Positions 1-33,760 of a stretch of DNA of 64,000 nucleotides are shown in pieces. Positions within the stretch are counted from its first letter, which is position 1, and every line of letters starts with the position of its first letter. The stretch covers positions 62,001 through 126,000 of IMG/VR virus record IMGVR_UViG_3300017991_000002. One strand, 5' to 3'. Both the position numbers and the translations under genes were made by a program. Under the pieces are notes generated by a model. It did not search any database, was not told where the DNA came from, and saw only the letters and a list, made by a program, of their open reading frames with translations.

Positions 1-141
1 CGTGTCAGGATCCGCACCGACGGGTGCGTTGACCCGGAAACGATCCTTGCGATCTGCCCTGAGGACGAGCAATTCAAGAAATGGGTAAACAAGAATCGTC
101 CGGAGGAAGGTATGTTCTTTAGTACCCACCTATGTGGTTAA
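1..141 (+). CDS. 3' end of hypothetical protein (partial)
   Basis: Frame 1 is open from the window edge to TAA at 139-141, followed by a hairpin. Confidence 0.55.
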   Translation, partial: RVRIRTDGCVDPETILAICPEDEQFKKWVNKNRPEEGMFFSTHLCG

Positions 142-151
142 CAGTACTATC

Positions 152-172
152 AGGCCCACTGTCTGTGGGCCT
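152..172 (+). terminator. Hairpin, probable terminator
   Basis: AGGCCCAC-TGTCT-GTGGGCCT, with a T-rich tract slightly downstream. Confidence 0.5.
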
Positions 173-232
173 CGCAATAATCATTTATTTTTCTTTATTT
201 GAATCACTGTTCTCTACGGAAGGAGGTACTCC

Positions 233-841
233 ATGGCCTTCAAGTTCGACATTATCTTGAAGCCAAAGAAGAGAGGTAACTGGCGTCCTGAAGTTATTAT
301 TACTCTGGAAATCCTGGCTCCGGCATTTCCACACAGGCCTTACGTACCACGATTACACATAGTCTCAATAAATATGAAGGACTTTATTGAGAAAGGGATA
401 AGGCCTGAAGAGGCAGAATGGTTTTGGCCTGTTACACACGAAAAGCCCTTCAAAATAATTTCACGAGATAAGTGGTTCCTTGATCTCAGCGACCTTGCAA
501 GGGATTCTTCTGATAATCTGAAGGAGGATTGCACCCATGCTTTTCATGATAGTCCAAAGAGGGGCGTGGAGGCTGCTTATCCCTTAACGGGAGGAGACAT
601 AGGTCCCGGTGGATTTCTTGAGGTAAACTATAGACACGATCTACATTTATTTCTGCCGTGGAGGCCGGGAATCAGGCCGGACTATTCAGACTATATGGCC
701 AGGTTTGAAAATGCAGGTCGCTGGTTTGCTGAAAGATTAAAGGACGGCGAAGATAGCGGACAAAACGATGAGATGATTATCTCTGTAACCTCTGCGAGAA
801 AAAAGTCGAGGGAGCAGGGTGTCAGGAAATTACGCTTTTGA
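233..841 (+). CDS. Hypothetical protein with C-terminal RKLRF tag
   Basis: AGGAGGT RBS; 202 aa; ends GVRKLRF*. Confidence 0.8.
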   Translation: MAFKFDIILKPKKRGNWRPEVIITLEILAPAFPHRPYVPRLHIVSINMKDFIEKGIRPEEAEWFWPVTHEKPFKIISRDKWFLDLSDLARDSSDNLKEDCTHAFHDSPKRGVEAAYPLTGGDIGPGGFLEVNYRHDLHLFLPWRPGIRPDYSDYMARFENAGRWFAERLKDGEDSGQNDEMIISVTSARKKSREQGVRKLRF

Positions 842-854
842 ATCTTTGATTACA

Positions 855-1336
855 GGGGGTGAAAATTGCGGCATAAGGATACTATAGCCGAAGCTGGCTC
901 GCCCGCGACCGATCCCTTTCAGAAGAAAGGGCAAATCGGGGAGTTGCACCATAAGGTGCGCCTGCGGAGGAGGAACCGAGAGGATTCTACGGTGGGGCAA
1001 GCGCCGGCCATGCCTGACCAGAGGTCCTATCGCACATTCTTGGGGATGCCTCGGGTGACTCGACAGAAAATAGAATCGAGGCCCAACTTATAAGAGGATT
1101 ATAATAGGATGAACGAAAAAGGAGACCGTGTTCAGTGTGCGAGCTTTATTATCATACTTGGGGATTCCATAGGCTAAGAAGCAGGGATTGATCCTACTCT
1201 TAGAGGATTCCGTTTCAATCTCGGTGGAGCTCAGGGTGGCCACCTTTAAAAACCCCTTGAGGTGGCGGGTGTGGTGAGGAAAGGACTAACCCATAACGGA
1301 GTGTGCAGATGCTGCTCTTACAAAAGGGGTTTTTTA
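855..1336 (+). ncRNA. Candidate large structured ncRNA (unclassified; ends and strand approximate)
   Basis: Intergenic, with many nested and long-range complementary segments (see findings). Confidence 0.55.
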
Positions 1337-1404
1337 TTTCCGCACAAATATAGTGGTCATTATGGCCACTTGAAATATACCCAACCTTTTCAGAAAGGAT
1401 TCAA

Positions 1405-1569
1405 GTGAGAAAGAATCAACGCTGTCCGGGGTGTGGTCGTCGGTACAAAAAATCCCACGACGATCGAGAAAAGAAGTATACGAAGGAATGCTTGTCTTAC
1501 AAGGAATACAAGGCAGCAGCTGCAAAAATTCGAGAAGCAAGAAATATAACCACCAAATCATCTTCGTAG
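1405..1569 (+). CDS. 54-aa basic protein with CxxC (weakly SEC-C-like)
   Basis: GAAAGGA RBS, GTG start, RKNQRCPGCGRRYKKSH; stop overlaps the RBS of the protease gene. Confidence 0.55.
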   Translation: MRKNQRCPGCGRRYKKSHDDREKKYTKECLSYKEYKAAAAKIREARNITTKSSS

Positions 1570-1579
1570 GAGGTGTCAC

Positions 1580-4027
1580 TTGAAGAAGAAGTTCAAAGAA
1601 GTACCCGTCGAATTACTCAGAAAAGTTTGTCCGACCGATATCATGAAATTCAAGACCACCGATGATATCGAACCGTCGTCCAATATCCTTGGCCAAAAAC
1701 GTGCCGTCGATGCTTTAAATATGGGCATTGAGATGAAAGGGAAGGGATTCAATATATTTATCACCGGCGCGCCAGGGACCGGAAGAAGGGAGATGGTTAA
1801 ATCATTTCTCGGGGGCTTGGAGGAGCAGAAGAAGGAGTTTCACGATATATGCTACGTGAACAACTTCCAGAATGAAGACATGCCTACCTTGCTTGCCCTG
1901 CCTAAGGGGCATGGTGTTGAATTGAAGATGGATATGGAGAACCTGACGGAAACAGTTATCCGGAGCACTCCCTCGATTCTTGAAAGTGATGAATACAGGG
2001 AAGCAAGGAAGAAGCTAACGGACGAGTACCAGGAAAAGGAGCAGGAGGTCTTCAAGGAGTTTGAGGAGGTATTAAGCGAGCATGGATTTGGCCTGATTCA
2101 AATTGCCAATCATGACGTGTCAAATGTGCGTCCAGAAATTGCTCCACTTATCCAAGACCGTCCCGTTCCATTGAGAATGCTTGAAGATCAGAAGAAGGAT
2201 GGGATAATCACCAAGGAGAAATTTGATAAGATCAAGAAGACTTATGATGAGCTGAAAATAGAGATGGAAAAGGCGTTCCGTAAATCCCGGGATATTGGTC
2301 GAGAGTTGAAGAAGAAGCTGTCCAATCTGAATGATGACCATATCGGCCCCATGATTGAGGATCAGGTCACTGATCTGTGCTCTAAGTATAAAAGCGAGAA
2401 AGTGGCCGATTATTTACAAGCTGCCAAGAACCATATGGTCTCCAATATCGACCGATTGCAGCCAAAAAACACCGGGGAGCCCCCAAAGAATGAAGCGGAG
2501 GCACAAGGCAGGATGATGGACATGATATTCGGCAGCCAGCGTGATCCGTTGCTGCCTTATAAAGTAAATGTTATCGTGGACAACTCTGATCGCTTGGATG
2601 ACCCTATCGTCTTCGAAAATTTCCCTTCCTATAAAAATCTGTTTGGCTGTATCGAACGGGTCATTGATGCTCGAGGTGGGGCGGTCATTGACTTCATGAA
2701 AATCAAGGCTGGGTCCCTTCTTCGTGCAGACGGCGGTTATCTTATCGTTGATGCCCTGGATATGCTAATGGAATACGGTGTCTGGCAGACCTTAAAGCGA
2801 ATCATGAAGTCCGGAGAGATTGAAATACAGAACTTTGACCCATGGTCTTTTGGTGGGACCCTCCTGAAACCCGAACCGGTCAAGGTCAATGTTAAGATCA
2901 TCCTCATCGGGAGCAGTCACATATATCATCTCCTACACCACTTTGATGAAGACTTCCATAAGATTTTCAAGATTCGGGCTGATTTTGATTCTTCCGTCCA
3001 GCTGGAGAATGAAAGTATTGTCAAGTATGCTGAGCACATCAAGAAAGTCACTGCTGAGGAAGGGTTGCTTCCTTTCTCCAAAAGCGGAGTTGCTGCTATT
3101 GTCGAACAAGGGCTCCGAGAGGTGGGACATCGAAGGAAACTGAGCACCCGGTTCAGTGTGATCGATAACATCGTCCAAGAATCAAGCTACTGGGCGCAGA
3201 AGGATGGCAAAAAGACGGTGGACCATAAGTCGGTCGAGAAGGCACTTCAGGAGAAACGGATCCGGCTGAATATGGTAGAGGAGAAGATCCAGGAGATGAT
3301 TGAGGAAGGAGTACTCCTGATCGATACCGAGGAGCCCAAGATAGGGCAGGTTAACGGTCTTGCCGTATACCAGCTTGGTGACTACATGTTTGGGAAACCT
3401 TCCAGAATCACCGCTCAGTCGTCATTAGGGCGTGCTGGGATATTGAATATAGAAAGAGAGGCCGAGATGTCAGGAAAGATTCACAATAAAGGAGTCTTAA
3501 TCCTGTCCGGTTATTTGAAGGGGAAATATGCTCAAGAATTCCCCTTGAGTATGGAGGCCTCCATTGCCTTTGAACAGTCCTATGCTGGGGTGGAGGGTGA
3601 TAGTGCTTCGAGCACTGAGGCATTTGCCCTTCTTTCTTCCCTGTCGGGACTGCCTTTAAGGCAGGGAATCGCCGTCACCGGTTCGATGGATCAGCTCGGT
3701 CAGATCCAACCGATTGGCGGGGTGAATGACAAGATAGAGGGATTCTTTGATGTCTGCAAGGCACGGGGCCTTACTGGTGAGCATGGAGTTATTATTCCTC
3801 ATCAGAATGTTGAGGATCTTATGCTTCGTAAGGACGTCGTCCAAGCGGTTAAATCCAAGAAATTTCATATTTACCCCATTAAGACAGTGGATGAGGGAAT
3901 GGAAATTTTGACCGGTAAGACAATCCATCAGGTGAATAAGCTTGTCAAGGAACATCTTAAAAGGATGAATGACTTGATGATGGAGACGGGGAACGGGAAC
4001 GGCAATAACAAGAAGGGCAAGAAGTAA
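1580..4027 (+). CDS. lonC: LonC-type Lon-like serine protease (S16) with degenerate AAA+ module
   Basis: GDSASS catalytic Ser, IGGVNDKIEGFF Lys, YVNNF and GSLLRADGGYL motifs, coiled-coil insert; Walker A GTGRRE. Confidence 0.9.
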   Translation: MKKKFKEVPVELLRKVCPTDIMKFKTTDDIEPSSNILGQKRAVDALNMGIEMKGKGFNIFITGAPGTGRREMVKSFLGGLEEQKKEFHDICYVNNFQNEDMPTLLALPKGHGVELKMDMENLTETVIRSTPSILESDEYREARKKLTDEYQEKEQEVFKEFEEVLSEHGFGLIQIANHDVSNVRPEIAPLIQDRPVPLRMLEDQKKDGIITKEKFDKIKKTYDELKIEMEKAFRKSRDIGRELKKKLSNLNDDHIGPMIEDQVTDLCSKYKSEKVADYLQAAKNHMVSNIDRLQPKNTGEPPKNEAEAQGRMMDMIFGSQRDPLLPYKVNVIVDNSDRLDDPIVFENFPSYKNLFGCIERVIDARGGAVIDFMKIKAGSLLRADGGYLIVDALDMLMEYGVWQTLKRIMKSGEIEIQNFDPWSFGGTLLKPEPVKVNVKIILIGSSHIYHLLHHFDEDFHKIFKIRADFDSSVQLENESIVKYAEHIKKVTAEEGLLPFSKSGVAAIVEQGLREVGHRRKLSTRFSVIDNIVQESSYWAQKDGKKTVDHKSVEKALQEKRIRLNMVEEKIQEMIEEGVLLIDTEEPKIGQVNGLAVYQLGDYMFGKPSRITAQSSLGRAGILNIEREAEMSGKIHNKGVLILSGYLKGKYAQEFPLSMEASIAFEQSYAGVEGDSASSTEAFALLSSLSGLPLRQGIAVTGSMDQLGQIQPIGGVNDKIEGFFDVCKARGLTGEHGVIIPHQNVEDLMLRKDVVQAVKSKKFHIYPIKTVDEGMEILTGKTIHQVNKLVKEHLKRMNDLMMETGNGNGNNKKGKK

Positions 4028-4040
4028 CCGGACACTACCA

Positions 4041-4075
4041 GGACATTATCCGGACATTTTGTCCGGTTAGTGTCC
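4041..4075 (+). terminator. Long hairpin after lonC
   Basis: GGACATTA-T-CCGGACA-TTT-TGTCCGG-T-TAGTGTCC. Confidence 0.5.
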
Positions 4076-4095
4076 TATTTAGGGGGACTATAATC

Positions 4096-4257
4096 ATGGG
4101 TATTTTAGTGTCACTTGTTCTTTTTGTTTTTATTTGGTGGATCCTCTGTAAGGTATTTACACCGGGATTCTTTACTTCCTTTATCAGGAGGAGAGCGCCT
4201 GATATCCCGGAAGCAGAGCGTAAACGCAAGCTAAAGATTCGGGAGGACAAGCAATGA
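4096..4257 (+). CDS. 53-aa single-TM protein with RKLKI tag
   Basis: MGILVSLVLFVFIWWILCK...ERKRKLKIREDKQ*; ATGA-coupled to the next gene; below the ORF-track cutoff. Confidence 0.75.
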   Translation: MGILVSLVLFVFIWWILCKVFTPGFFTSFIRRRAPDIPEAERKRKLKIREDKQ

Positions 4258-4643
4258 TCTGGTCAATCATATTGGGCACCTTCTTTGGGATATTTTTTGG
4301 TATATTCTACTTTCTCAACCCTCTTCCCGGGGAGAGTGATGTTCGGGATGGCCGCTATCGGGACATAGATAGTGTGGCAAAGATTCTCGGTACCTTGTTC
4401 TGGGAAGTTGGTGAGGATAATGAGATGAGGGCATACGTGCAGGTACATGAGGAAGCCGCTAGGATCGTAGAAGGCTGGAATGAACGTATTCTGTCCATGC
4501 GAGAGACCGAGTCCCGCCAGCCTTCTAGTGACCAAGAGAATGGCCTGAGGGAGGTACATATTGACATGGAGGAGGAAGAGGTGGAAACTAAACCTCTTAT
4601 AAGGAAGAGAAAACTCAGGATTGAGGGGAGGGGGAAATCATGA
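4254..4643 (+). CDS. N-terminal TM protein with RKLRI tag
   Basis: Hydrophobic N-terminus; ends RKRKLRIEGRGKS*. Confidence 0.8.
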   Translation: MIWSIILGTFFGIFFGIFYFLNPLPGESDVRDGRYRDIDSVAKILGTLFWEVGEDNEMRAYVQVHEEAARIVEGWNERILSMRETESRQPSSDQENGLREVHIDMEEEEVETKPLIRKRKLRIEGRGKS

Positions 4644-4999
4644 GGACTGTTTTATGGTTATTATTCTTTGGGGCTTCGTTTTATCTCTCCCTTCTTAGCG
4701 TGGTCACTAGAGATACTGCTAAGGGAAGGGGATTGGAGGGTGAGGATTATCATGTATTTATGGACATGAGGATTAAAAGGTCCCCAATTATCTGGTTCCT
4801 TCTCGCTGCGTCCGCTATTCCCTTAATATTCTTGCTGATATACGGTGTTTTTACTTTCCAGTGGCAGGCATTTGTACTGATCCTTATGGCCTCGTTGAGC
4901 CACAACCTAAGGAAGAGGGTTAACATATCCTACTGTATCGATCAGCTGATTAACTGTGTATGCTTAGGAGTTCTGTGGACATGGGTAATGAAGATATAA
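4640..4999 (+). CDS. Multi-pass membrane protein
   Basis: 3-4 hydrophobic segments; ATGA overlap. Confidence 0.75.
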   Translation: MRTVLWLLFFGASFYLSLLSVVTRDTAKGRGLEGEDYHVFMDMRIKRSPIIWFLLAASAIPLIFLLIYGVFTFQWQAFVLILMASLSHNLRKRVNISYCIDQLINCVCLGVLWTWVMKI

Positions 5000-5220
5000 A
5001 GCAGGTGAAGGGATATCACCTTTTATCAAGATCCGCGGTGATCCCCCTGGTTAATAGGGTTACCGGTGAGGAATATGTGATAAATAATGATCACATGTTC
5101 GGAATTTTACGACAGTTCGAGTTCCTGGTTCATGATGGAGAACTTATTCCTTTTAGCGAAGGTGTTTTGGAGACTCCCCAGCCTTTAAAATCAAAAAGAA
5201 AACTCAGAATTAATCCGTAG
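4981..5220 (+). CDS. Hypothetical protein with RKLRI tag
   Basis: AGGAG upstream of ATG 4981; ends SKRKLRINP*. Confidence 0.7.
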   Translation: MGNEDIKQVKGYHLLSRSAVIPLVNRVTGEEYVINNDHMFGILRQFEFLVHDGELIPFSEGVLETPQPLKSKRKLRINP

Positions 5221-5308
5221 CAGCTACCTGCCTTGCAAACGTGCACTTGCTGTTGCTTGGCAAATCTTGGTAGGTAAGGGAGGTGAGAAGTAGCCAGAAA
5301 GGAGTTGC

Positions 5309-5581
5309 ATGGATTTAAAAGAGTTTCAAGACCGTCTCGCTGAGGCCGGTTTGACTATCCAAGACTTAGAGAGTTTTTGCTTGGTAATGTATAGCCCTTT
5401 TGGCAAGAAGAGCAAAAACCCTATACCAACCTTAAGGGCTATTTTCAAGTTCCTGAACATTAGTATTCAAGTTCACTTTAAACGCTATGATGAAGAAATG
5501 GAGCCGGGACTGAACGTCCGAATGAAAAACTATGGTGATAATCTTCATGTATGGCTTAACTTTAAGGAGGAAGATAATTGA
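5309..5581 (+). CDS. Hypothetical protein
   Basis: AAGGAG RBS, 90 aa. Confidence 0.75.
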   Translation: MDLKEFQDRLAEAGLTIQDLESFCLVMYSPFGKKSKNPIPTLRAIFKFLNISIQVHFKRYDEEMEPGLNVRMKNYGDNLHVWLNFKEEDN

Positions 5582-5946
5582 GCAGAGAAGATGATTTGGC
5601 CGGAGTCTTAAAAGATATCCTTGATGCATTTTGGGATATGTCTCCCTTAGAGTATGTTCAATCAAGGGGGCACCCATGTATGAGCGATAAGATAGGAGAA
5701 GAAGTATTGAACCGCGCTCGAGAGCTCGTTAAAGGGAGCAAAACCACAGACGCAGTCAAGATTCTCCATAATCGTTACATTGGAGATGACGAAGAGCGAA
5801 AGAAGTCCCTGGAAAAGGAGCGGGTGATTAATAAGATTGCGGTTGAACTTGATCACATCCGCATGGATGGAATGTGTATTCCAAGAGATGCTAAGTCAAG
5901 AAGAAGAGAGGAGGATTTATGTTTGTTGTTGGTATCTTATTCTTAG
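5578..5946 (+). CDS. Hypothetical protein
   Basis: AGGAGG RBS, TTGA overlap. Confidence 0.7.
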   Translation: MSREDDLAGVLKDILDAFWDMSPLEYVQSRGHPCMSDKIGEEVLNRARELVKGSKTTDAVKILHNRYIGDDEERKKSLEKERVINKIAVELDHIRMDGMCIPRDAKSRRREEDLCLLLVSYS

Positions 5947-6242
5947 TTGGAGGATCCCTTGGAGCCGTTATTAACTTTAGCCATAAAGCATCACGGCAGT
6001 GGGTGGCGTGGGGAATACTATTCTCCATTTTTGCCTTGTTGGGAGCTTGGATGATGTTCTTGGACTGCTTGGCCCAACCTATCAATGTTATCTCCAAAAT
6101 GGTGGTTACAGATACACTGCCTCCTCCCCTGGAGGTGACATTTGATAGGCCGGTTACCGTTATTGTATCAAGAAGTATTTACCCCTGGTGGAAAGTAACC
6201 GATGACCCAATTTACTCCTATCATGTTGTCCTGAGGAGGTGA
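5919..6242 (+). CDS. Two-TM membrane protein
   Basis: GGAGG RBS; two hydrophobic helices. Confidence 0.75.
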   Translation: MFVVGILFLVGGSLGAVINFSHKASRQWVAWGILFSIFALLGAWMMFLDCLAQPINVISKMVVTDTLPPPLEVTFDRPVTVIVSRSIYPWWKVTDDPIYSYHVVLRR

Positions 6243-6246
6243 TCTT

Positions 6247-6594
6247 GTGAAGAGCAAGGAGATCAGGTCTATTTTTGATGAGGTGAGTAAAGATATATCA
6301 GTGATAGAGGACATAAGGAACGATACAAAAAGATTATTGACAAGCCTCGGTTTTTCAGTCCACAAGGACATCTGCATAATTGCCTCCCGTAACGGGGGTA
6401 TACAGATTGACTTCAGACTTGGCACCATGTCCTGTAACGGTAAGTTTGTAAAGACCCATGAGGATGTTGAGGAAGCTGTTGATATGCTCATAGAGGCTCT
6501 GGCGGAGAGAAGGAAGATCGTTGCCCACTCCAGAGAGAACCATGGGGTAATGAGATCGTTCTTGACGGTTTTTAATAATAGACGTATGAGTTAA
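6247..6594 (+). CDS. Hypothetical protein
   Basis: GGAGGT RBS, GTG start. Confidence 0.75.
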   Translation: MKSKEIRSIFDEVSKDISVIEDIRNDTKRLLTSLGFSVHKDICIIASRNGGIQIDFRLGTMSCNGKFVKTHEDVEEAVDMLIEALAERRKIVAHSRENHGVMRSFLTVFNNRRMS

Positions 6595-6671
6595 TAGCCC
6601 TTTTGAGAGTTTCGGCTATACAGAAACTCCAAGCAGGAAAAGCCTGCCGAGCAAAAACTTCAAAAAAGTTT

Positions 6672-6732
6672 TTGCTTTCCCGGTTGGGCTTTTCCTCTAT
6701 AATAATGAATTACCCCCCAAAAAAGGTAATTC
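6672..6732 (+). promoter_or_regulatory. Promoter-like element plus ATTACC/GGTAAT inverted repeat (copy 1)
   Basis: TTGCTT-N20-TATAAT then GAATTACC-N10-GGTAATTC; related copy at 32649-32710. Confidence 0.55.
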
Positions 6733-6742
6733 TGGAGTATAG

Positions 6743-6777
6743 AAGCCCATCCGGACACGTTCCGGGTGGGCTTTTTT
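6743..6777 (+). terminator. Intrinsic terminator
   Basis: AAGCCCATCCGGA-CACGT-TCCGGGTGGGCTT + T run. Confidence 0.8.
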
Positions 6778-6801
6778 GTTTATTTTTCCAGGGAGAGAAA
6801 A

Positions 6802-7329
6802 ATGGAATATTTAATAGATACGTTTTCTTTTGGGACCTTTGTAAACAGTCGTGGAGAAATGAGAGACGTGATGAGTTATATAACCGCGAGCAATTCGATC
6901 CCTAGAGATCAAGGTCTAGAGTTTCATAATCTAGATCATAATGGAGTAGTATGGTCTTTGGCAGGGCAACGAGGACCGATATTCTACTTCCAGGAATGGG
7001 ACGGTCTTAACAGTATATTTGTTACCACTGAAGGTCGTTCATTTCACGCTGATCCGTCGAGGCTGGGATGGGATATAGCCTGTGTAATTAAAGGACTACT
7101 GGCGGAAAATAGGAGGACACTTTTGGTCTTGACTCCTGTCAATAACAATGAGTATCCGGTAGGGTTTGCCATATGCAGAGTTTATGTGGTTCGTGCAAAT
7201 TTGATATGGGCTGTCCTAAATAAAAACAGGACTACTGCTGTTCCTATTGGTGAATGGATAGCCGAAACCGATACTGATGTCGGAAAGAGCCCCCCCTTGA
7301 AGGGTCGCAGAAGGTTGAGGATTGTATGA
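6802..7329 (+). CDS. Hypothetical protein with RRLRI tag
   Basis: GGGAG RBS; ends GRRRLRIV*. Confidence 0.8.
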   Translation: MEYLIDTFSFGTFVNSRGEMRDVMSYITASNSIPRDQGLEFHNLDHNGVVWSLAGQRGPIFYFQEWDGLNSIFVTTEGRSFHADPSRLGWDIACVIKGLLAENRRTLLVLTPVNNNEYPVGFAICRVYVVRANLIWAVLNKNRTTAVPIGEWIAETDTDVGKSPPLKGRRRLRIV

Positions 7330-7595
7330 GATTATATATGAGCAAAGAAGGGGTAACGGAAGCCATAAGAGTAATGGGAGAATTAATTGATCTTCTCGAT
7401 GCCCCCGGTATCATGGCCGATTTCCAATCGCGACAAATGGTCAGGGCAATACGAGGACATTTCAGAACTATTGCCGGACATTTTAATAAACACGGACAGA
7501 TAACATTTATTGATTTGGAGATGAAGCTTAAGACACCGGAAGACTTACAACAATATAGGAGAAGATTGAGACTGGAGGATGACAATGGCATATAA
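7326..7595 (+). CDS. Hypothetical protein with RRLRL tag
   Basis: ATGA overlap; ends RRRLRLEDDNGI*. Confidence 0.75.
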   Translation: MRLYMSKEGVTEAIRVMGELIDLLDAPGIMADFQSRQMVRAIRGHFRTIAGHFNKHGQITFIDLEMKLKTPEDLQQYRRRLRLEDDNGI

Positions 7596-8094
7596 ATTAT
7601 ACCTACCTCATCCGGTATCGTTTAGGACATCGCTCACTAATTCTTCTTACCTCAGTAGAAAATTCCGCGGTTTGTTGAGGAATATTATTGGTACCATAGA
7701 GCTGGATAGGGGACGTCTTGTTGATACAGGTGGGGGAACAGTAGCATTTCTAAGGTCGGTCAATCCAGATACACATTACACAATTCATCTTAGTGGATGG
7801 CATCCTATCCCTGAAACCGTAATCAGAAACTTTGGAGTTATCTTTTCCTCCTTGATAGAAATAGACTCAGTTGTCCTTTTTACAGCCTGTAACTTTCCAC
7901 AAGGATCCGAGAAAATCGGCTACAGGGTTATGAGGGGAGATATTCGGCGTCTATATTTTCCGGCCTGTATAAAACTGGAAAACGGGGTCTATGTTCGGAT
8001 TGACTCCGACTTTGCCGTAAAACACCTCGGCCGGGATGAAGGGAAGAGGAGAGGTAAAGTAACGACAAGAAGATTGAGAGTAGGAGGTCGGTAA
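7585..8094 (+). CDS. Hypothetical protein (paralog of 8094-8552) with RRLRV tag
   Basis: Shares EKIGY...FPACI.L.NG with the next gene. Confidence 0.8.
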   Translation: MAYKLYLPHPVSFRTSLTNSSYLSRKFRGLLRNIIGTIELDRGRLVDTGGGTVAFLRSVNPDTHYTIHLSGWHPIPETVIRNFGVIFSSLIEIDSVVLFTACNFPQGSEKIGYRVMRGDIRRLYFPACIKLENGVYVRIDSDFAVKHLGRDEGKRRGKVTTRRLRVGGR

Positions 8095-8552
8095 TGGAGC
8101 ATGAGAAGGAATTCTTACCCCATAATATACAGATCAAGACATCTATTAACAGCACTCCCTATTTTAGAAGGAGGCTCCGTGACTTGTTGTTCCGTCTTCC
8201 TGGAGACGATTCATACTCAACAGACAAACCACTGGGAGAAATAGCAAACGTGCATTTTCATCCCCCAACAGCCATTATTTATTGGTATTCCTCAATACCT
8301 CGTTCATTATTCAAAGGGTTTGCTCTCGTTTTCTGTGAGATTATAAAGAAGGGGGAGTTGGCTTACTTTGTCTCGCACGACTTTGAGAAGATCGGATATG
8401 CCATTTGGCGAGGGGGAATCCACGAAGTAATTTTTCCGGCATGTATCAGACTTGCAAATGGGACTATTATGCCTGCCTCAGAATTTGACTTTATAAGGAA
8501 CGCTAAGATAGAAAAGGTACCTTCAGTAAGAAGGTTAAGGATTCCAAAATGA
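8094..8552 (+). CDS. Hypothetical protein (paralog of 7585-8094) with RRLRI tag
   Basis: TAATG overlap; ends SVRRLRIPK*. Confidence 0.8.
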   Translation: MEHEKEFLPHNIQIKTSINSTPYFRRRLRDLLFRLPGDDSYSTDKPLGEIANVHFHPPTAIIYWYSSIPRSLFKGFALVFCEIIKKGELAYFVSHDFEKIGYAIWRGGIHEVIFPACIRLANGTIMPASEFDFIRNAKIEKVPSVRRLRIPK

Positions 8553-8851
8553 GTGGCTGGGTAGAAGACCTCATCATGGGCCCCAGCCAATGTTACTTCT
8601 TCGTTGTTTTTAAGGACACGCGGTATTGCCTGTACCTTAGATGGCGGGACAGGAACCCGTGGAAGGGGTATATTATCAAGGATGTTCAATGGGTAGGGAC
8701 GATAACAGGAGGTAAGATGTCTGATGATCTCCTAAAGCAAAGAGGACTCTACTTTAGACAGGAAGAACACAAAAAGGCGCAATCGGCCATGATGCTTGCC
8801 TGGAATGATTATGTGAAAGGAAAGGTAAATATTTCCTTTGGGAGGAACTGA
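8549..8851 (+). CDS. Hypothetical protein
   Basis: Coupled ORF; YLRWR..PW motif. Confidence 0.75.
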   Translation: MSGWVEDLIMGPSQCYFFVVFKDTRYCLYLRWRDRNPWKGYIIKDVQWVGTITGGKMSDDLLKQRGLYFRQEEHKKAQSAMMLAWNDYVKGKVNISFGRN

Positions 8852-9138
8852 TGTCAAAACGATATATAGAGGATACAAAAATGAATAACGAATTTGATGA
8901 CCCAAGAATTGTTTCATTGGTACGAGGGATAGAAAGAGTAAAATACGAGGCCGAAAGTGCCCAGTGTCTAGAGGTTGTTGTTGTCCTTAATACTCTCCTG
9001 GGCGCCCTCCTCTGCGGCAGGTTGGTGGACCTGACAAAACTCTGTCAGGAGTTTGCTGGGGAGATAAGAGAAGAGCTTGCCAGCAAAAGACCAAAAAGAA
9101 AGATTCGAGTCAATGAAGATACCACATCGACCAGATAA
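8851..9138 (+). CDS. Hypothetical protein with RKIRV tag
   Basis: TGATG overlap; ends KRKIRVNEDTTSTR*. Confidence 0.7.
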   Translation: MSKRYIEDTKMNNEFDDPRIVSLVRGIERVKYEAESAQCLEVVVVLNTLLGALLCGRLVDLTKLCQEFAGEIREELASKRPKRKIRVNEDTTSTR

Positions 9139-9367
9139 TATTGGTCCTTTCAAGGTAAGAAAGAGTAAGAAATATACAAGAAAGTGGAGAATCTGTTATG
9201 GTTCACTTACTGTATTGGACAGGATAAATTTTAAGCGGGATGCTGCCCGAGAAGCTTACAACATAAACAAGCCGTGGAGGGACGCCATAACTAGGCTGAA
9301 TATAACAGATGGAGTTATTCCAACCTTCAGGAGACTTAAAGTGAGGGCGGAAGAAGGAGAAGAATAA
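9113..9367 (+). CDS. Hypothetical protein with RRLKV tag
   Basis: Ends FRRLKVRAEEGEE*; start uncertain. Confidence 0.7.
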   Translation: MKIPHRPDNIGPFKVRKSKKYTRKWRICYGSLTVLDRINFKRDAAREAYNINKPWRDAITRLNITDGVIPTFRRLKVRAEEGEE

Positions 9368-9673
9368 ATGATATCACCGCACATGTTAGGGAGATATGAG
9401 TTCCACAGTCAGTCAACTGATAGCCATAAATTTTATCATGTATACTTTGACCACATGACAGGAACATATACATGCGAACATGGTCGATGTGGAAGAACTT
9501 CTATGAAGATCATGAGAGGTATTCCCGAGGAGAAGGCCCTCAAAAAGATAGTGGAGAAGATTAATAAAGGATATGAGAAAGTGACCGATCGCGGTTATAC
9601 CATAGAAGTCAATCGGGGTTCATCCCCTCCAACCCATAAAGTGAGAAAGCTTACTGTTCAGGAAAAGGGATAA
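9368..9673 (+). CDS. WGR-like domain protein with RKLTV tag
   Basis: SHKFY...HGRCG...EKINKGY pattern typical of WGR domains. Confidence 0.7.
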   Translation: MISPHMLGRYEFHSQSTDSHKFYHVYFDHMTGTYTCEHGRCGRTSMKIMRGIPEEKALKKIVEKINKGYEKVTDRGYTIEVNRGSSPPTHKVRKLTVQEKG

Positions 9674-9939
9674 TGCTATTTACTAACCGGATGGTCAGAG
9701 ACATGCTAAGGGACATAAACTGTATACCTGATCAGGGGCTTGTCGACATGGTAAGAGATGATCTGAACAGAGATCAGATATATAACGAAATCGCCAGAGC
9801 TCATACTAACTACGGCCGTATGCTTTATATCGATTTTTTAAGGGTTCTTGAGGAGAAAGTAGATATAGCTCTGAGAGCTTTAACTATTGAAAAGGCACGT
9901 TTGGGGGAGCCTATAAGGAGGTTGCGTATACATGAATAA
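9673..9939 (+). CDS. Hypothetical protein with RRLRI tag
   Basis: TAATG overlap; ends PIRRLRIHE*. Confidence 0.75.
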   Translation: MLFTNRMVRDMLRDINCIPDQGLVDMVRDDLNRDQIYNEIARAHTNYGRMLYIDFLRVLEEKVDIALRALTIEKARLGEPIRRLRIHE

Positions 9940-10132
9940 TAAAGGAATTATTGAGCTGCAACATAGTATCGAGTCAATCCTGTCTGACCCACAGATAATT
10001 CCTGTTTTTGATTTTCCTATAGAGGAGACTTACTCTTCCCTAATAGAGAGGCATCGGATACCGGAGGACATGTTAGTCAAACCAAAAAGGATATACTCTG
10101 TCAGAAAATTGAGGTTACCGTGCGTATCCTAA
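9932..10132 (+). CDS. Hypothetical protein with RKLRL tag
   Basis: Ends SVRKLRLPCVS*. Confidence 0.7.
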   Translation: MNNKGIIELQHSIESILSDPQIIPVFDFPIEETYSSLIERHRIPEDMLVKPKRIYSVRKLRLPCVS

Positions 10133-10536
10133 AGGTTGGGAAGAAGCCAAGAGCCAAGCGTCTGGAGATGCCTCGGCTTATTGATTGGGACAACCCAGAA
10201 ACTCAGAGAATAATTAGGGCGGCCAGGTGTTATGTTCGTAGAGATAGAGGTTTGGAGTACCCCAGCGGAACCAGATTATGGAGGGGAAGACAGGGAGGTA
10301 TATGGTTACCTTCTAATGGGGAGTGGCAGGAATGTTGCAATCATATAAAGCCTCCGATACCTAACTACCCATTTACACACTACAGACATTGTAAAACTAT
10401 AAAGCATATAATTCATCTTTATAAGGTTGATTATAAGGCTACAAAGGAGTTTATAAACCTGATAGTAAAGGGGGTGATACCTATGGAGGACAGTAAGATA
10501 GGGAAGCATAAACGGGTCTTAAGGATACGAACTTAA
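10120..10536 (+). CDS. Basic Cys/His protein with RVLRI tag
   Basis: W.P...E.QECC..I.PP....PF....HC.T.KH motif; ends KRVLRIRT*. Confidence 0.75.
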   Translation: MRILKVGKKPRAKRLEMPRLIDWDNPETQRIIRAARCYVRRDRGLEYPSGTRLWRGRQGGIWLPSNGEWQECCNHIKPPIPNYPFTHYRHCKTIKHIIHLYKVDYKATKEFINLIVKGVIPMEDSKIGKHKRVLRIRT

Positions 10537-10548
10537 AAAGGAGTAAGT

Positions 10549-10725
10549 ATGGTGACAGAATCTATGGAATATGAGTGCCTGGAGGATGCTCTACGATATG
10601 CTTTCGACGACTGCTTGGAGTTAAGGGAGAAGATAAAAGGAAAGAAGAAAAAGCGGGTCGGTAAGCTCGATAATAAGTTAAAGCGGTCTAGAAAGGGCCG
10701 AGAGAGGAGAGTAAGGAACAAATAG
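10549..10725 (+). CDS. 58-aa protein with acidic N-half and very basic C-half
   Basis: AAGGAG RBS; ...KIKGKKKKRVGKLDNKLKRSRKGRERRVRNK*. Confidence 0.6.
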   Translation: MVTESMEYECLEDALRYAFDDCLELREKIKGKKKKRVGKLDNKLKRSRKGRERRVRNK

Positions 10726-10786
10726 ATCGGATAAATCCGCTCCACATATTGATAAGTGGAGACATTATGTCTGGGAAAGGAGGCCT

Positions 10787-11053
10787 ATGCTTAGGTTTTT
10801 TACTCTGCTTATGCATAAACACAGATGGCGTCGGATCGCTTTCTTTTTTGCGCCGCCTTCTGGGGAGCTGTTTCGACGATCCCTGGACGGTCCTACCAGG
10901 GAGAGGGCGACATACGGTATAACGACCATTGTCTGGGAATGTGATATTTGCGGAAAGTCTAAAAAGATGGAAGTTCTCGGCGAGGTTGTTGATCGGCCCC
11001 CTGTCGAGCAAAGGACGGAAAAGTACTCTAGGAGGCTTAGCATCCAAAGGTAG
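10787..11053 (+). CDS. Zn-ribbon-like protein with RRLSI tag
   Basis: AGGAGG RBS; HKHRW...CDICG; ends SRRLSIQR*. Confidence 0.75.
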   Translation: MLRFFTLLMHKHRWRRIAFFFAPPSGELFRRSLDGPTRERATYGITTIVWECDICGKSKKMEVLGEVVDRPPVEQRTEKYSRRLSIQR

Positions 11054-11064
11054 AAAGGAGATAC

Positions 11065-11274
11065 GTGTTTATCCTAACATTTGAACCAGGGGCTGTGGCT
11101 ATAAAGCCATGGAAACCGGGACAGCCACTAAAAGGAGATAGATTAGTGGCTACTATACCAGAATTAGGTGAATTGCTATGGGATCTTGAGATTGCTGAGG
11201 ACATGATCAATGATGCCGTAGAAAGATTGGAGAGCAGTGAGCAGTCTATCACTCTTCCAGTCAAGACACATTAA
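11065..11274 (+). CDS. Hypothetical protein
   Basis: AAGGAG RBS, GTG start. Confidence 0.7.
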   Translation: MFILTFEPGAVAIKPWKPGQPLKGDRLVATIPELGELLWDLEIAEDMINDAVERLESSEQSITLPVKTH

Positions 11275-11319
11275 AGAAGTTTTACCCAACCACAAACCCG
11301 TATTACAGGAGGTGTAACT

Positions 11320-12063
11320 ATGGGTATCTTTCAATTGAACCATCGTCAAGAGTTGAACACTTTACAAGTACCATCCGCAACCGCAACGTATCAGCCAATC
11401 CCCCATCGGGATGCTTTGGAGATTGTGGAGGACCAGTTCAAGAGAAGCGGTTTTTCCATTCAAAAGGAGTCAATTAGTATTGGGCAGGAGGGTCTCGTCA
11501 TGGCAGCCAAGTGGCAGTTGGAGCCTGAAGGGTTTGAAGCGATGCCGTCGCATTCGCCTATTGCTGTTGTCCTGAACGGTAATACGCGGAAGCACACCCT
11601 CAGAGTTGGTTTTGGGCTGAATTGCATGGTTTGTACCAACGGCATGTTCATTTCTGAGAAGTCAATCAAGAGAAAACACACCAAGAATATCTATCTTGAC
11701 ATCCCGGACATGGTCTATGATATGATCCAAAGCTCGGAGAATTGGTACTCGAAGTTTATGGGATTTCTGGAGGAGTTGAAGGATTTTGAACCAAGACGAG
11801 AGTACGTCAATGATATGTTGGTTCGATCAATGGAGGCAGGAGTCATCGCTTCCTCTCACATCAGAAAAGTCCTGAACATCTTCAGCGATCCAACTTATGA
11901 AGAGTATGGTAATGACACGTTGTATACTCTCCACAACGCTTATACCGAGGTTCTTCGTGACACCTCGACGGATATGGAAATTCCGCGGAAAACGATCAAA
12001 CTGAACGAAATGATCGATGGGATCAGGAACAATTTTCGATCTCGTAAACTCAGAATTCAGTAG
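11320..12063 (+). CDS. DUF932-like protein with RKLRI tag
   Basis: TYQPIPH, VCTNG, KRKHT, LHNAYTE motifs; ends RSRKLRIQ*. Confidence 0.75.
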   Translation: MGIFQLNHRQELNTLQVPSATATYQPIPHRDALEIVEDQFKRSGFSIQKESISIGQEGLVMAAKWQLEPEGFEAMPSHSPIAVVLNGNTRKHTLRVGFGLNCMVCTNGMFISEKSIKRKHTKNIYLDIPDMVYDMIQSSENWYSKFMGFLEELKDFEPRREYVNDMLVRSMEAGVIASSHIRKVLNIFSDPTYEEYGNDTLYTLHNAYTEVLRDTSTDMEIPRKTIKLNEMIDGIRNNFRSRKLRIQ

Positions 12064-12073
12064 GAGGTGCAGT

Positions 12074-12550
12074 ATGACAAGAAAAGTCAGAGTCAACAAC
12101 AACCACAATATTGTTCACCAGATTACCTTACAGAATGTAGAGAATCTACGGAAGATGGAGGAAAAAATCAAGAGTGAGTTGAAAGAGGTGGTCGAGAAAA
12201 GAAAGGAAGCTGAGGACGAGGTTCTTGATAAGATCAAGAGACGGTTCTCGGTCGAACCGGGTGAACTGTCCGCCAAGATCGAAGAGAAAACGAAACGAAA
12301 CTCGGTCAGCTGGAAGACAGAATTCGTCTCCTTTGTTGGGAAACAGATCCACAGTAGACTGAGACGGAGCACCGATATACTCGAAAAGCTGATAGAAATC
12401 TGCGGTTCCCAGAAGAAAGCGAAATCCATCCTCAAGAAATTTTCCAATAACGAGGATGCTGCTTTTATTCATGCCGCGGGAGAGGCGGAAGCAAAGAAAA
12501 TCTCCGACAGCCAGCCTGAGGAGATCCAGGAAATATTAGTTATCGAATAG
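12074..12550 (+). CDS. Coiled-coil hypothetical protein with N-terminal RKVRV
   Basis: AGGAGGT RBS; starts MTRKVRV. Confidence 0.8.
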   Translation: MTRKVRVNNNHNIVHQITLQNVENLRKMEEKIKSELKEVVEKRKEAEDEVLDKIKRRFSVEPGELSAKIEEKTKRNSVSWKTEFVSFVGKQIHSRLRRSTDILEKLIEICGSQKKAKSILKKFSNNEDAAFIHAAGEAEAKKISDSQPEEIQEILVIE

Positions 12551-24286: not shown

Positions 24287-24539
24287 GGATTTTTTCGAGG
24301 TAGAACAGCCGGATTTGAGGAGGTATAATGGAGAATGTGAAGTAACATTCCCTGTAAGCTATACCTATAATGGGGGTATAATCATAGATGGTAAGTGGTA
24401 TAAAGGGTTCAGGGTTCCTTACCCTAAATTGCGGGAAGGTTTCACATTGAAGACCCTGGGGGTCGGATTAGACCTCAATCAAAAGCCTCCTCGGGCTACT
24501 ATGCTGCTTACAAAAGCAGGGAAGGAAGATAAGAAATGA
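24279..24539 (+). CDS. Hypothetical protein
   Basis: Coupled ORF. Confidence 0.7.
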   Translation: MSEDFFEVEQPDLRRYNGECEVTFPVSYTYNGGIIIDGKWYKGFRVPYPKLREGFTLKTLGVGLDLNQKPPRATMLLTKAGKEDKK

Positions 24540-24955
24540 CCAACAACGAAGAAAGGCTGATCAAAGTATTAAAGAGTTTCATCAACGTAACTGGAAATGA
24601 TGAAGGAGAGATCCTGGAGTACGTAAGACAGGAGGCGATAGGATTAATTAGAGACCTTCAAAGGGAGGAAAGATATAAGACCACACCTCCCCCCTGGTCC
24701 GTAGAACTCAATTACTTTCCCAGCGAGGAGGATAAGGCCCCTGTATTCCGTATATTTACTGAGGCACCAGGGTCATCCGGACGGGAGCAACTCCCCGATG
24801 AGGTGGACGGCAATCGTTTTCTGATAGAAGCCGCTCCTGACTTATATGATGTATGCATGAGAGCATGGAACTTTATCCATGACCACGTCCCGGGAGAGAG
24901 CGAGAAAATCAGGAGCCAGATTAATGTGGCCATGAACAAGGCAGAAGGAAAATAG
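24536..24955 (+). CDS. TPGPW-like family protein, copy 3
   Basis: TTPPPW; NRFLIEAAPDLY; AMNKAEG. Confidence 0.75.
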   Translation: MTNNEERLIKVLKSFINVTGNDEGEILEYVRQEAIGLIRDLQREERYKTTPPPWSVELNYFPSEEDKAPVFRIFTEAPGSSGREQLPDEVDGNRFLIEAAPDLYDVCMRAWNFIHDHVPGESEKIRSQINVAMNKAEGK

Positions 24956-24972
24956 ATACAGGAGGATTGATT

Positions 24973-25506
24973 ATGCCTTATATTTGGACCGAGCCAGAAC
25001 TATTCCTCGAACATCGAGGAGTTAAAGTATGGCATTGTTATGAGGACGATAATGTATCTGAGCATTGGTTTACTACAGACCCAGCCGTTGGGTTGGATAG
25101 TGATGACAGAGATAAGTACACCTTTGATGCCAGAGATTTACCATTGATAATCGGTATGACCAAGGGAGATTATGACCTCCGGATACGGTGCGCCATTGAT
25201 AATGAGGGTTTGAAGCTGCCAGAAAGTCAAAGTTACCATAAATGCAGCAGTAATCCGAATTCGCAACTGGCTACTGAGATCAGTCGGTTGGTTTACTTTA
25301 AGCAGAAGGCAATAAGCAATGGATCGGGGAATGAATACAAGGTTGCCTGGTGCGGACTTTCCGGGGAATACATTGTTCAAGTGCTGTCAATAGAAGGAGG
25401 AGAGGAGGAGTGGCTTTGCCTTCATAAGGTTGACGGTGAATCGTCTGATCCAGAACGTTACTTCGAGAAGACCGGTAAGAGTTACAAGGAGGATTTTGAT
25501 GGATGA
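24973..25506 (+). CDS. Hypothetical protein
   Basis: MPY.W.EPELFLEH.GV.V.H.Y.DD; FD.R.LP. Confidence 0.8.
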   Translation: MPYIWTEPELFLEHRGVKVWHCYEDDNVSEHWFTTDPAVGLDSDDRDKYTFDARDLPLIIGMTKGDYDLRIRCAIDNEGLKLPESQSYHKCSSNPNSQLATEISRLVYFKQKAISNGSGNEYKVAWCGLSGEYIVQVLSIEGGEEEWLCLHKVDGESSDPERYFEKTGKSYKEDFDG

Positions 25507-25693
25507 TATAATTACAAAGGAATTGAAAAAGGAAAGTATCGATTTCCTTAAAGGTGTGAAGTATGGTATCTGGATGTTTGCTTGGTGGAAGGACGGTGAG
25601 CAATTTGTGGGGTCTGGGTCAACCAGGTTAAGGGACATTACGGAAGAAATTGATAGACTGATCGAACATAAGCGGAAAAATGTTTCCGAATAA
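25499..25693 (+). CDS. Small conserved phage protein
   Basis: FAWWKDG.Q.VG. Confidence 0.7.
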   Translation: MDDIITKELKKESIDFLKGVKYGIWMFAWWKDGEQFVGSGSTRLRDITEEIDRLIEHKRKNVSE

Positions 25694-25743
25694 CGATCGA
25701 TCTTTGTAATAATCAGCAACATTTATCCAAGAAAGGAAAAACA

Positions 25744-26139
25744 ATGAGTGGACCAGAAACCCCGGCAGAAAAGTCATGGAGCTTACTCCATGGAATACAG
25801 ACAGATCTTACCTCTATTCTCGATGAGCTCAAAAGAAGCTCGTCGAATTCAATACAAAGTAAAGGCATGCTGAAACTCTCCTTACGGTATGTGATTAAGA
25901 CCATCCAGGAAATAAAGGATATCCTTTATCCCATGGAAGAAGAGAACAGTAGATTATTTGAGCTGGCGAATAGTGTGTCTGACTACCTCAGCCTTAGGAG
26001 GAACTGTATAGTGAATCAAGGGGCAGTGGGTGGACTAGAGCAGGCCGAAGTCGATAAAATTGATGACATGTTAGCATTGATTAAATCAATCAAGAACATG
26101 AAGGAGAAGAAAAATGATCTCTCTATTGATATTAACTAA
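25744..26139 (+). CDS. Helical hypothetical protein
   Basis: AAGGA RBS. Confidence 0.7.
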   Translation: MSGPETPAEKSWSLLHGIQTDLTSILDELKRSSSNSIQSKGMLKLSLRYVIKTIQEIKDILYPMEEENSRLFELANSVSDYLSLRRNCIVNQGAVGGLEQAEVDKIDDMLALIKSIKNMKEKKNDLSIDIN

Positions 26140-26649: not shown

Positions 26650-27314
26650 TTGGGTATACATCTATCTGACAGTGTCGGGGAAACCTGAGCACTTAAGTGA
26701 GTTCAAGAGGGCTGTTAGGTATACAGAGGAGGGGGGTAGAAATCCCCTTCAGTTTCCACAAGATACTCCCCTCTCCAGAAGAATTTAAAGGAGTCCTTGT
26801 GGGTGGGTGTACCATTGACGGAGAGAGTGTCAGGGTTTGGAGGGAGGAGATAGTTAATGGGGAGAAAAGAGCGGTCAAAATTCCGGACGAAACCTTGGAG
26901 GAGTGGAGAATAAAATACGGGGCAGACAACTGGTATGACTGGAACAATCAAAATTGGGGAACGAAGTGGGATGCCTGTGACCTCGAGTTTGAGGAATCTC
27001 CCACCGATGAGTTTGTGACCATCAGATTTAATACTGCGTGGTCGTTCCCGGAGCCTGTCTTTGATGAATTGTTCGAAATGTTTCCAGACCTTACGTTCGA
27101 GGGCGATATTGAAGAGGAAGGTGGTCTTTTTCACGGTTATATTACGGGTTGTGGTTATGAACTTATCGACGGGCCCAGTCCGACCCAGCAGGAGCGATGG
27201 GAGAGTGAAGAAGAGGAGTTGGAGATAGAGAGTTTCAATGAACTTTTTAATCCACCTGTTCCTGAGAAGGGGTCATCGAGAAAGATTAAAATCAATAAAG
27301 GAGGTGTATTGTGA
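26642..27314 (+). pseudogene. Api92/YubB (DUF1281)-like protein split by a frameshift at a G6 run; RKIKI tag
   Basis: MPNW... in one frame; F.F.KILP, WYDW...NWGTKWDA, FNTAWS.P in the +1 frame. Confidence 0.7.
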
Positions 27315-33676: not shown

Positions 33677-33690
33677 CCATAAAATTTATT

Positions 33691-33721
33691 TTCCTTTTTT
33701 GTTTGTGATGCGTATAAGTAT
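33691..33721 (+). promoter_or_regulatory. Putative phage promoter CGTATAAGTAT (copy 1)
   Basis: Intergenic; identical 11-mer at 55834-55844 with a similar T-rich upstream box. Confidence 0.6.
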
Positions 33722-33760
33722 AGTAGGAAGATAAATCACGATTTTTGGAAGGAGAACGTA

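Follow-up and report, generated by a model that had tools for sequence, protein, structure and literature searches.

What role does a short basic peptide play near the C-termini of two small, membrane-anchored proteins that are encoded directly downstream of a phage lonC gene, and is LonC the protein that it engages? The two genes belong to an uncultured, T4-like jumbo phage with a complete genome of ~205 kb: the source record is 205,367 bp long, has 123-bp direct terminal repeats and is rated complete, and the 64,000-nucleotide stretch analyzed here (the window) corresponds to its bases 62001-126000. The head module of this phage is of the T4 type (Portal_T4, Gp23 and Peptidase_S77), cultured phages are only distantly related to it (portal identity ≤26%), and the sequencing runs that contain the stretch are limited to a sediment metagenome DNA run, which is probably its source, with no RNA run among them.

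A preliminary description of the locus had presented the first gene (ORF1) as encoding a transmembrane helix, a linker and RKRKLKI, and the second (ORF2) as encoding a transmembrane helix, a small domain, an acidic linker and RKRKLRI, and both accounts are confirmed. ORF1 reads M-GILVSLVLFVFIWWILCKVF-TPGFFTSFIRRRAPDIPEAE-RKRKLKI-REDKQ, such that the helix is followed by a 22-aa linker and then by the basic peptide, as is also evident from hydropathy; the layout of ORF2 is evident from its sequence and from a single-sequence AF2 model (pLDDT 60; Table 1). We take ORF1 to be a gene because its ATG is preceded by a Shine-Dalgarno-like GGGGG run (4082-4086) at a distance of 9 nt, its stop codon overlaps the ORF2 start codon as ATGA (an arrangement repeated between ORF2 and the next gene), and its frame has the best codon-usage score of the six, 0.10, which is the sole positive value, the antisense 71-aa ORF scoring -0.18. 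ORF1 starts 68 nt downstream of the lonC stop codon, and the hairpin within this gap, which has no T-run on its 3' side, was not called as a terminator in a terminator scan. ORF2 is an orphan: a search of 5.8 billion proteins returned ORF2 itself and no homologue, neither Pfam nor PHROG yielded a match, and no structural look-alike in the ESM Atlas rose above noise. Two untagged genes further downstream bring the number of membrane proteins clustered at 4096-6242 to four.

Table 1. Features of the lonC locus, the window and the surrounding genome; positions refer to the window unless given as genome positions, and "tag" denotes the basic C-terminal peptide.
Feature	Position	Strand	Details
Tagged ORF upstream of lonC	233-841	+	202 aa, ends RKLRF
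LonC-type Lon-like protease	1580-4027	+	815 aa, untagged
Perfect 7-bp hairpin	4050-4066	+	CCGGACA-TTT-TGTCCGG, in the 68-nt gap after lonC; T-run absent 3'
ORF1	4096-4257	+	53 aa, bitopic membrane protein with tag
ORF1 transmembrane helix, residues 2-21	4099-4158	+	Kyte-Doolittle maximum 2.63 (19-residue window)
ORF1 tag RKRKLKI	4219-4239	+	core R44-I48 at 4225-4239; 5 residues before stop
ORF2	4254-4643	+	129 aa, bitopic membrane protein with tag, orphan
ORF2 transmembrane helix, residues 2-21	4257-4316	+	Kyte-Doolittle 2.01; AF2 helix, pLDDT ~75
ORF2 helical hairpin, residues 38-87	4365-4514	+	AF2 helices 38-53 and 58-87, pLDDT 55-81, low confidence
ORF2 acidic disordered linker, residues 88-116	4515-4601	+	no secondary structure in AF2, pLDDT ~47-54; E/D-rich
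ORF2 tag RKRKLRI	4602-4622	+	core R119-I123 at 4608-4622; 6 residues before stop
Multi-TM membrane protein	4640-4999	+	119 aa, untagged, ATGA-coupled to ORF2
Tagged soluble ORF	4960-5220	+	86 aa, ...KSKRKLRINP
2-TM protein	5919-6242	+	107 aa, untagged
Run of nine tagged ORFs	6766-12063	+	6766-7329, 7326-7595, 7579-8094, 8094-8552, 8851-9138, 9077-9367, 9673-9939, 9932-10132, 11320-12063 (DUF932)
Tagged DUF1281_C protein	26697-27314	+	205 aa
Tagged ORF	28481-28978	+	165 aa, ...RVRRLRVS
Portal (Portal_T4)	53807-55504
Tagged ORF	61886-62251	+	121 aa, ...NRKIRLGGEE
Family-A DNA polymerase fused to UDG domain	within window
DnaB-like helicase and SF2 helicase	within window
SbcCD-like nuclease	within window
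Terminase-like protein	within window
gp23-type major capsid gene	outside window
Prohead protease (Peptidase_S77)	outside window
T4-type RNA ligase	outside window
lonC block	1-12100		13 of 25 genes tagged (52%)
Minus-strand block	genome 12.3-52.1 kb	-	33 of 83 genes tagged, plus four RKLRM cases
Rest of plus-strand block		+	7 of 90 genes tagged
Late structural block	genome 136.5-205 kb		0 of 65 genes tagged

The peptide is found well beyond these two proteins: genome-wide, 53 ORFs end in R-[KR]-[LI]-[RK]-[IVLF] no more than 12 residues from the stop codon, and 4 further ORFs end in RKLRM, bringing the total to ~57, or roughly 19% of genes. Within a greedy gene set, 35 genes are tagged, as compared with a mean of 0.19 (maximum 2) in 200 residue shuffles. 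Across the 53 ORFs the first position of the core is always R, followed by K (37) or R (16), L (49) or I (4), R (44) or K (9), and I (23), V (15), L (14) or F (1). Residues upstream of the core are E-rich at -12 to -9, with prolines at -7 to -5 and K or aromatic residues at -3 to -1, and those downstream are P, N, Q, G or K. The core itself constitutes the extreme C-terminus in three of the 53 carriers and is usually followed by 1-6 variable residues, two being the commonest number (16/53) and 12 the largest. When 52 carriers are aligned, mean column identity is 8%, and only M1 and the R of the tag are invariant, with the L being near-invariant.

Selection acts on the peptide, because the DNA information content at the tag is 3-periodic, the flanking nucleotides are not conserved, and synonymous codons vary to the extent that Leu is encoded by any of its six codons and Arg by CGN as well as AGR; on the strength of these same properties we rejected a DNA- or RNA-level element as the origin of the tag. 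Tag codons are nevertheless biased towards AGA-AAG-TTG-AGG, and the commonest spacing puts GAGG ~8 nt before the next start codon, such that the same bases may also act as the Shine-Dalgarno sequence of the following gene, which could account for the bias. In-frame C-terminal matches are confined to the coding strand of each block, and the minus strand of the window has none. The tag is a modular, peptide-level address appended to ~57 unrelated proteins. It is real, and the literature that we searched held no description of it, although the query combining LonC and phage was swamped by word-start matches.

Tagged genes are unevenly distributed over the genome (Table 1), with 33-37 of the tags residing on the minus-strand block, 10-50 kb from lonC, and with no tagged gene in the replication module (window 33.7-49.5 kb). 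The tagged blocks and the replication module have in common a conserved 45-nt promoter-like element, no full copy of which was found in the structural block, and no late-promoter motif could be defined.

Most carriers are orphans that match no family, and those that can be recognized are of two kinds. The first resembles head proteins. A gp23/gp24-like capsid paralogue of 332 aa (Gp23 match, 3e-11 to 4e-10) shows 24% identity with the true capsid protein over the C-terminal half of the latter, the split gene for which was compared exon by exon with the exons not joined, and the paralogue bears its tag on an extension of ~40 aa past the end of the true capsid protein. Similarly, a 184-aa carrier is a short paralogue of the S77 prohead protease (match to phrog_207, head maturation protease, 8.6e-11) that aligns with the true protease, with which it has an SH dipeptide and a GFS/GIS stretch in common, and another carrier weakly matches an N-terminal segment of the capsid protein. 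The true prohead protease has 529 aa, an extension of ~340 aa and a whole-protein net charge of -59, and it ends in ...ARKVIKKHGWR rather than in the tag. The other identifiable carriers are Lar-like, DUF932, DUF1281_C and ExoX-like_C proteins, the carriers thus including proteins of an anti-restriction type. The ExoX-like_C family is matched by one tagged ORF, not mapped to a particular ORF, and the tagged ORF at 61886-62251 occupies the place where a relative with a 51% identical portal has an ExoX-like_C gene. A DUF932 homologue in a Salinibacter phage lacks the tag, which, along with the extension on the gp23-like carrier, indicates that the tag is modular.

When viral contigs were scanned with LonC, with ORF2 and with the portal, each singly, no relatives were obtained, and the tagged gp23-like protein is an orphan for which none were found; in none of the scans with these four proteins did we find a relative carrying the tag. 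Relatives of the portal number only two, both on contigs of ≤13.5 kb, and the one with readable DNA has no tags. A scan with a portal profile added only distant phages, in which the DNA pattern of the tag occurred at chance level.

Among the ~57 carriers, an N-terminal transmembrane helix is present in ORF1 and ORF2 only, a third carrier (8851-9138) having a weaker hydrophobic stretch that is internal. That these two are membrane-anchored tag carriers, as originally proposed, is borne out by hydropathy (2.63 over residues 1-27 of ORF1 and 2.01 over residues 1-24 of ORF2) and by the AF2 helix spanning residues 2-21 of ORF2. Genome-wide, ~14 small proteins have the look of being membrane-bound and 2-3 of these are tagged, a share close to the genome-wide 19%, such that membrane proteins are neither favoured nor avoided as carriers. 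Neither ORF1 nor ORF2 has a K or R before its helix. After the helix, ORF1 has K19 and RRR31-33, and ORF2 has a net acidic flank (3 K/R vs 5 D/E in residues 22-40) to which the tag adds 5 K/R, the tag contributing 5-6 K/R to each of the two tails. Because basic residues are absent before the helices and present, along with the tag, after them, the positive-inside rule predicts cytoplasmic tails (N-out/C-in), firmly for ORF1 and with moderate confidence for ORF2; extracytoplasmic tails, which would have overturned the original proposal, are not what is predicted. The N-termini were also considered as Sec signal peptides, a reading that we rejected: there is no basic n-region, the h-region is ~20 residues long and AxA is absent. 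The two anchored carriers impose one condition on any model, namely that the receptor of the tag must act on the cytoplasmic side, close to the inner membrane or at it; they are of value for this condition, and less so as a finding by themselves.

LonC, encoded next to the two genes, had been named as one candidate partner of the tag. By its Pfam matches (LonC_helical, AAA_32, LonB_AAA-LID and Lon_C; PF05362, PF13654, PF20436 and PF20437) and its alignment to MtaLonC (PDB 4FWD, E 1e-89), in which the catalytic Ser (GDSA) and Lys (NDK) align, the product is a bona fide LonC with an intact Ser-Lys dyad; at the Walker-A position it has GAPGTGRR. Its identity with >100 listed homologues is 46-53%, and these are bacterial wherever a source is named, and the best match lies among BatA-D/MoxR genes on a bacterial contig, indicating that the gene is probably a fairly recent bacterial import. 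The LonC studied so far has no ATPase or unfoldase activity and degrades unstructured chains only (PMC3391209), it also works as a chaperone (PMC13069640), and no substrate tag or tag recognition is known for LonC (PMC3391209, PMC13069640). A complex prediction for LonC and residues 88-129 of ORF2 scored 0.00, which has no bearing either way on binding. Because half of the genes in the block are tagged, the adjacency is not significant: two tagged neighbours of lonC are expected by chance about a quarter of the time, given that 13 of 25 genes carry the tag. Most tags are, moreover, 10-50 kb away on the other strand, which, with the apparent bacterial import of lonC and the limitation of LonC-type enzymes to unstructured chains, leaves the case for LonC as partner unsupported, and we infer that the position of the two carriers beside lonC is incidental.

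How, then, might the tag work? Our preference, which is tentative and held with low confidence, is that it is a docking peptide which, although C-terminal, can be likened to the capsid-targeting sequence of T4, and that the anchored carriers are membrane-bound clients or tethers. ORF1 and ORF2 would be single-pass inner-membrane proteins showing R-[KR]-[LI]-[RK]-[IVLM] on the cytoplasmic face, and the tag would dock carriers onto one common phage-encoded cytoplasmic receptor, a common receptor being implied by the presence of the tag on a fifth of the proteome. The receptor that we favour would be the prohead assembly core, with the tag as the C-terminal counterpart of the T4 capsid-targeting sequence, and with ORF1 and ORF2 as either membrane-resident clients or tethers that would hold the receptor at the membrane, the site of T4-type prohead nucleation. 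We lean towards the prohead core because paralogues of the capsid protein and the prohead protease are tagged and the head genes are T4-type, because the charge of -59 on the protease with its scaffold-like extension would complement a basic tag, and because the internal proteins of T-even phages are the closest precedent. C-terminal tails are the usual entry route of proteases and scaffolds into procapsids. T-even internal proteins are diverse defence proteins that have only the capsid-targeting sequence in common (PMC3012670), and the head of a jumbo phage can contain ~50 protein species (PMC7411985).

Membrane anchoring had earlier been advanced as an argument against a capsid-loading signal, but this argument is weak: only two of ~57 carriers are anchored, the tag occurs on the capsid and protease paralogues, and anchored carriers do not exclude a capsid role because T4 prohead assembly begins on the inner membrane (PMC9958956). 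Several observations nonetheless count against docking on the prohead core. The tag is found at the C-terminal end of its carriers, opposite to the N-terminal capsid-targeting sequence of T4, and gp21-type sites upstream of the tag are not enriched overall ([LIVM]-x-E occurs in the last 30 aa of 26/53 carriers vs ~23 expected, with a local 2-fold excess at -20 to -11). In addition, the promoter-like element ties the tagged blocks to the replication module and not to the structural block, carrier bodies are mostly acidic or neutral, unlike the T4 internal proteins, which are basic, and co-translationally inserted transmembrane proteins make awkward capsid cargo.

The main rival, which we consider unlikely, is that the tag is a degradation or remodelling signal, by which carriers are passed to a phage AAA+ machine and/or LonC, or to a host protease of the ClpX/FtsH type, and cleared at a set time. 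A C-terminal, basic-hydrophobic tag is reminiscent of the MuA-type ClpX signal, RRKKAI, and it comes after E/P/K-rich linkers that are probably disordered. The tagged blocks encode LonC, catalytically intact by sequence, as well as a classical-clade AAA ATPase of 485 aa with Bcs1 and p97 as its best PDB matches, and there is a second AAA gene, its product likewise of the classical clade, at genome 58830-59993; the cytoplasmic tail of a transmembrane protein is a normal handle for such proteases, and the carriers are accessory and anti-defence-like. However, the signal in the ssrA and MuA degrons is at the free C-terminus, where the core is located in only three of 53 carriers, two residues following it in 16. 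Furthermore, enzymes of the LonC type are without unfolding activity or known tag recognition (PMC3391209, PMC13069640), this LonC looks recently imported, and clearance offers no clear reason for tagging paralogues of the capsid protein and the prohead protease.

Slightly less likely again, the tag could dock to some other hub, be it the nucleoid, a chaperone of the host, or a condensate or compartment of phage origin, with ORF1 and ORF2 being small membrane-active effectors that carry it by chance. The invariant R and near-invariant L, the P, N, Q or G breakers after the core and the P before it give the look of a short linear motif for a defined pocket, and a transmembrane protein of 53 aa with a charged tail, such as ORF1, has the format of small membrane-active toxins and effectors. 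Yet no candidate hub was identified, and the untagged state of the DNA polymerase, both helicases and SbcCD speaks against an import signal for a replication compartment. On the same grounds, namely that the large replication enzymes examined are untagged, we rejected the tag as a signal for importing the replication machinery into a phage nucleus.

That ORF1 and ORF2 are instead dedicated tethers, whose sole job is to recruit a tag-binding partner (LonC or another) to the membrane, we regard as improbable. It would suit ORF1, which is just a transmembrane helix, a linker and the tag, as well as the predicted cytoplasmic location of both tails and the adjacent, translationally coupled arrangement of the two genes beside lonC. 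However, chance would be expected to produce that adjacency in a block with 52% of its genes tagged, some 55 soluble carriers would compete such that only a small share of the receptor could be recruited, the helical hairpin of ORF2 is superfluous for a tether, and nothing connects LonC to the tag. Finally, although the stretch is known from a DNA run only and the codon bias places GAGG before the next start codon, it is highly improbable that ORF1, and perhaps ORF2, is not expressed or that a DNA or RNA signal at the ends of genes gave rise to the motif as a by-product, given the 3-periodic information, unconserved flanks and varying synonymous codons, the genome-wide agreement of tag matches with gene orientation, and the Shine-Dalgarno-like run, ATGA overlap and codon score of ORF1.

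More broadly, the phage may practise proteome-wide, peptide-coded sorting, in which roughly one protein in five would be marked by the pentapeptide for one and the same phage-encoded receptor. This could be the prohead core or, alternatively, a AAA+ ring of the Bcs1/p97 type acting together with the ATPase-less LonC, and the anchored carriers would serve as membrane docking sites. We regard this as conceivable but doubtful. If true, this would be a new code for addressing proteins, portable between them, in a phage with no known ability to form a nucleus. As a targeting signal, an appendable five-residue address common to ~57 phage proteins would be both compact and portable. Should the tag load capsids, as in our preferred reading, the T4 capsid-targeting principle would extend to a C-terminal tag, implying that dozens of anti-defence proteins are injected with the DNA; should it be a degron, the phage would carry its own timed proteolysis system.

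Several known systems invite comparison with the one described here. MtaLonC of Meiothermus taiwanensis has the same domain set and Ser-Lys dyad as the phage enzyme, which differs in being phage-encoded, and no substrate tag is known for LonC (PMC3391209, PMC13069640). The ssrA and MuA degrons are, like the phage tag, short C-terminal peptides of basic and hydrophobic residues that can be appended to any protein; however, their signals are at the free C-terminus, whereas the phage core is usually followed by 1-6 variable residues. We know of no cognate unfoldase for the phage tag. In the HK97 protease, lambda C/Nu3 and the herpesvirus protease/scaffold, a C-terminal tail delivers the protease into the procapsid, to which the C-terminal tag on the short S77 protease paralogue bears a likeness, but those tails are present on one or two assembly proteins and the phage tag on a fifth of the proteome. 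T4 gp40 and the membrane-bound gp20 prohead initiator connect capsid assembly to the inner membrane at its cytoplasmic face (PMC9958956), and ORF1 and ORF2 would resemble them in this respect only, there being no sequence relation and any assembly role for the two being purely inferential. The T4 capsid-targeting sequence is an N-terminal peptide of ~10 residues that terminates in a cleavage site for gp21, whereas the tag is C-terminal, basic and situated 0-12 residues before the stop codon; the T-even carriers number three to a handful, as against ~57 here, of which two are membrane-anchored. As in this phage, the internal proteins of T4 and other T-even phages are many unrelated, small accessory or anti-defence proteins of hypervariable regions that have a short terminal peptide in common (PMC3012670), and we group the tag with such known terminal address peptides on phage accessory proteins.

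A promoter-like element, conserved and about 45 nt long (…TTTTCTTTTTTC.GTTCAGAAACGTATAAGTATAGTAG), occurs in nine copies and stands at the head of five runs of genes that carry the C-terminal tag R-[KR]-[LI]-[RK]-[IVLM]; it also heads the replication module, an operon with an AAA ATPase gene, and the genes that follow the portal. At five of the nine sites the element lies 28-48 nt upstream of a start codon, and at the other four it lies 77-421 nt upstream of the next called gene. No full copy of it was found in the late structural block.

Variants of the tag occur outside our first search pattern: four proteins carry a C-terminal RKLRM, and two RKLR[LV] cores are situated 20-22 residues before the stop. 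Two tagged ORFs of the window adjoin and look paralogous (…FPACIKLENG… versus …FPACIRLANG…), so some tags were inherited via tandem duplication. Three successive genes bordering the structural module are tagged; their products are the gp23-like paralogue, an orphan protein of 152 aa and a restriction-alleviation protein of the Lar-like kind.

Features of the phage genome, with coordinates in the window, on the whole record, and in stretches read outside the window (L-numbers)
Feature	Window	Genome	Stretch
Promoter-like element	33673-33730, 55796-55853	+58348, +127380, -23853, -36055, -41710, -45221, -52446	
RKLRM variants		13040, 19550, 32374, 34445	
RKLR[LV] cores	61484	50986	
Paralogous-looking tagged ORFs	7579-8094, 8094-8552		
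Tagged border trio		134738-136495	L006:8738-10492
First AAA ATPase (inside tagged minus-strand block)		24320-25777	L003:4320-5777
Second AAA ATPase		58830-59993	L004:18830-19993
Major capsid gene (minus strand)		169647-171834	L008:3647-5834
Long S77 protease		172416-174005	L008:6416-8005
Short S77 homologue		49742-50296	L004:9745-10296
DNA polymerase	38878-41754		
DUF5060/GH5 protein	56964-60083		

The two AAA ATPases belong to the classical clade and have unknown N-terminal domains of ~220-250 aa. The top PDB match of the first is the translocase Bcs1 (E 3e-21); in the second, the match to p97/Cdc48 stops at about residue 330, and this protein may be truncated.

Two homologues of the S77 prohead protease are encoded in the genome: a long one of 529 aa, which has a scaffold-like extension, a net charge of -59 over the whole protein and the C-terminal end …ARKVIKKHGWR, and a short one of 184 aa, which is RKLRI-tagged. 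The gp23-type major capsid gene, which lies outside the window, is split into an N-terminal and a C-terminal half by a 340-aa ORF (net charge +16) that may represent an intron or a homing-endonuclease insertion. Stop codons are present between the two halves, which were kept separate in the analysis rather than joined.

Within the window, the family-A DNA polymerase bears a domain of the uracil-DNA-glycosylase superfamily at its N-terminus. A protein of 1039 aa, which combines DUF5060 and GH5 cellulase-like domains with a hydrophobic C-terminal helix, may be a depolymerase; in a relative with a 51%-identical portal, the protein at the corresponding position has a match to MVP_shoulder.
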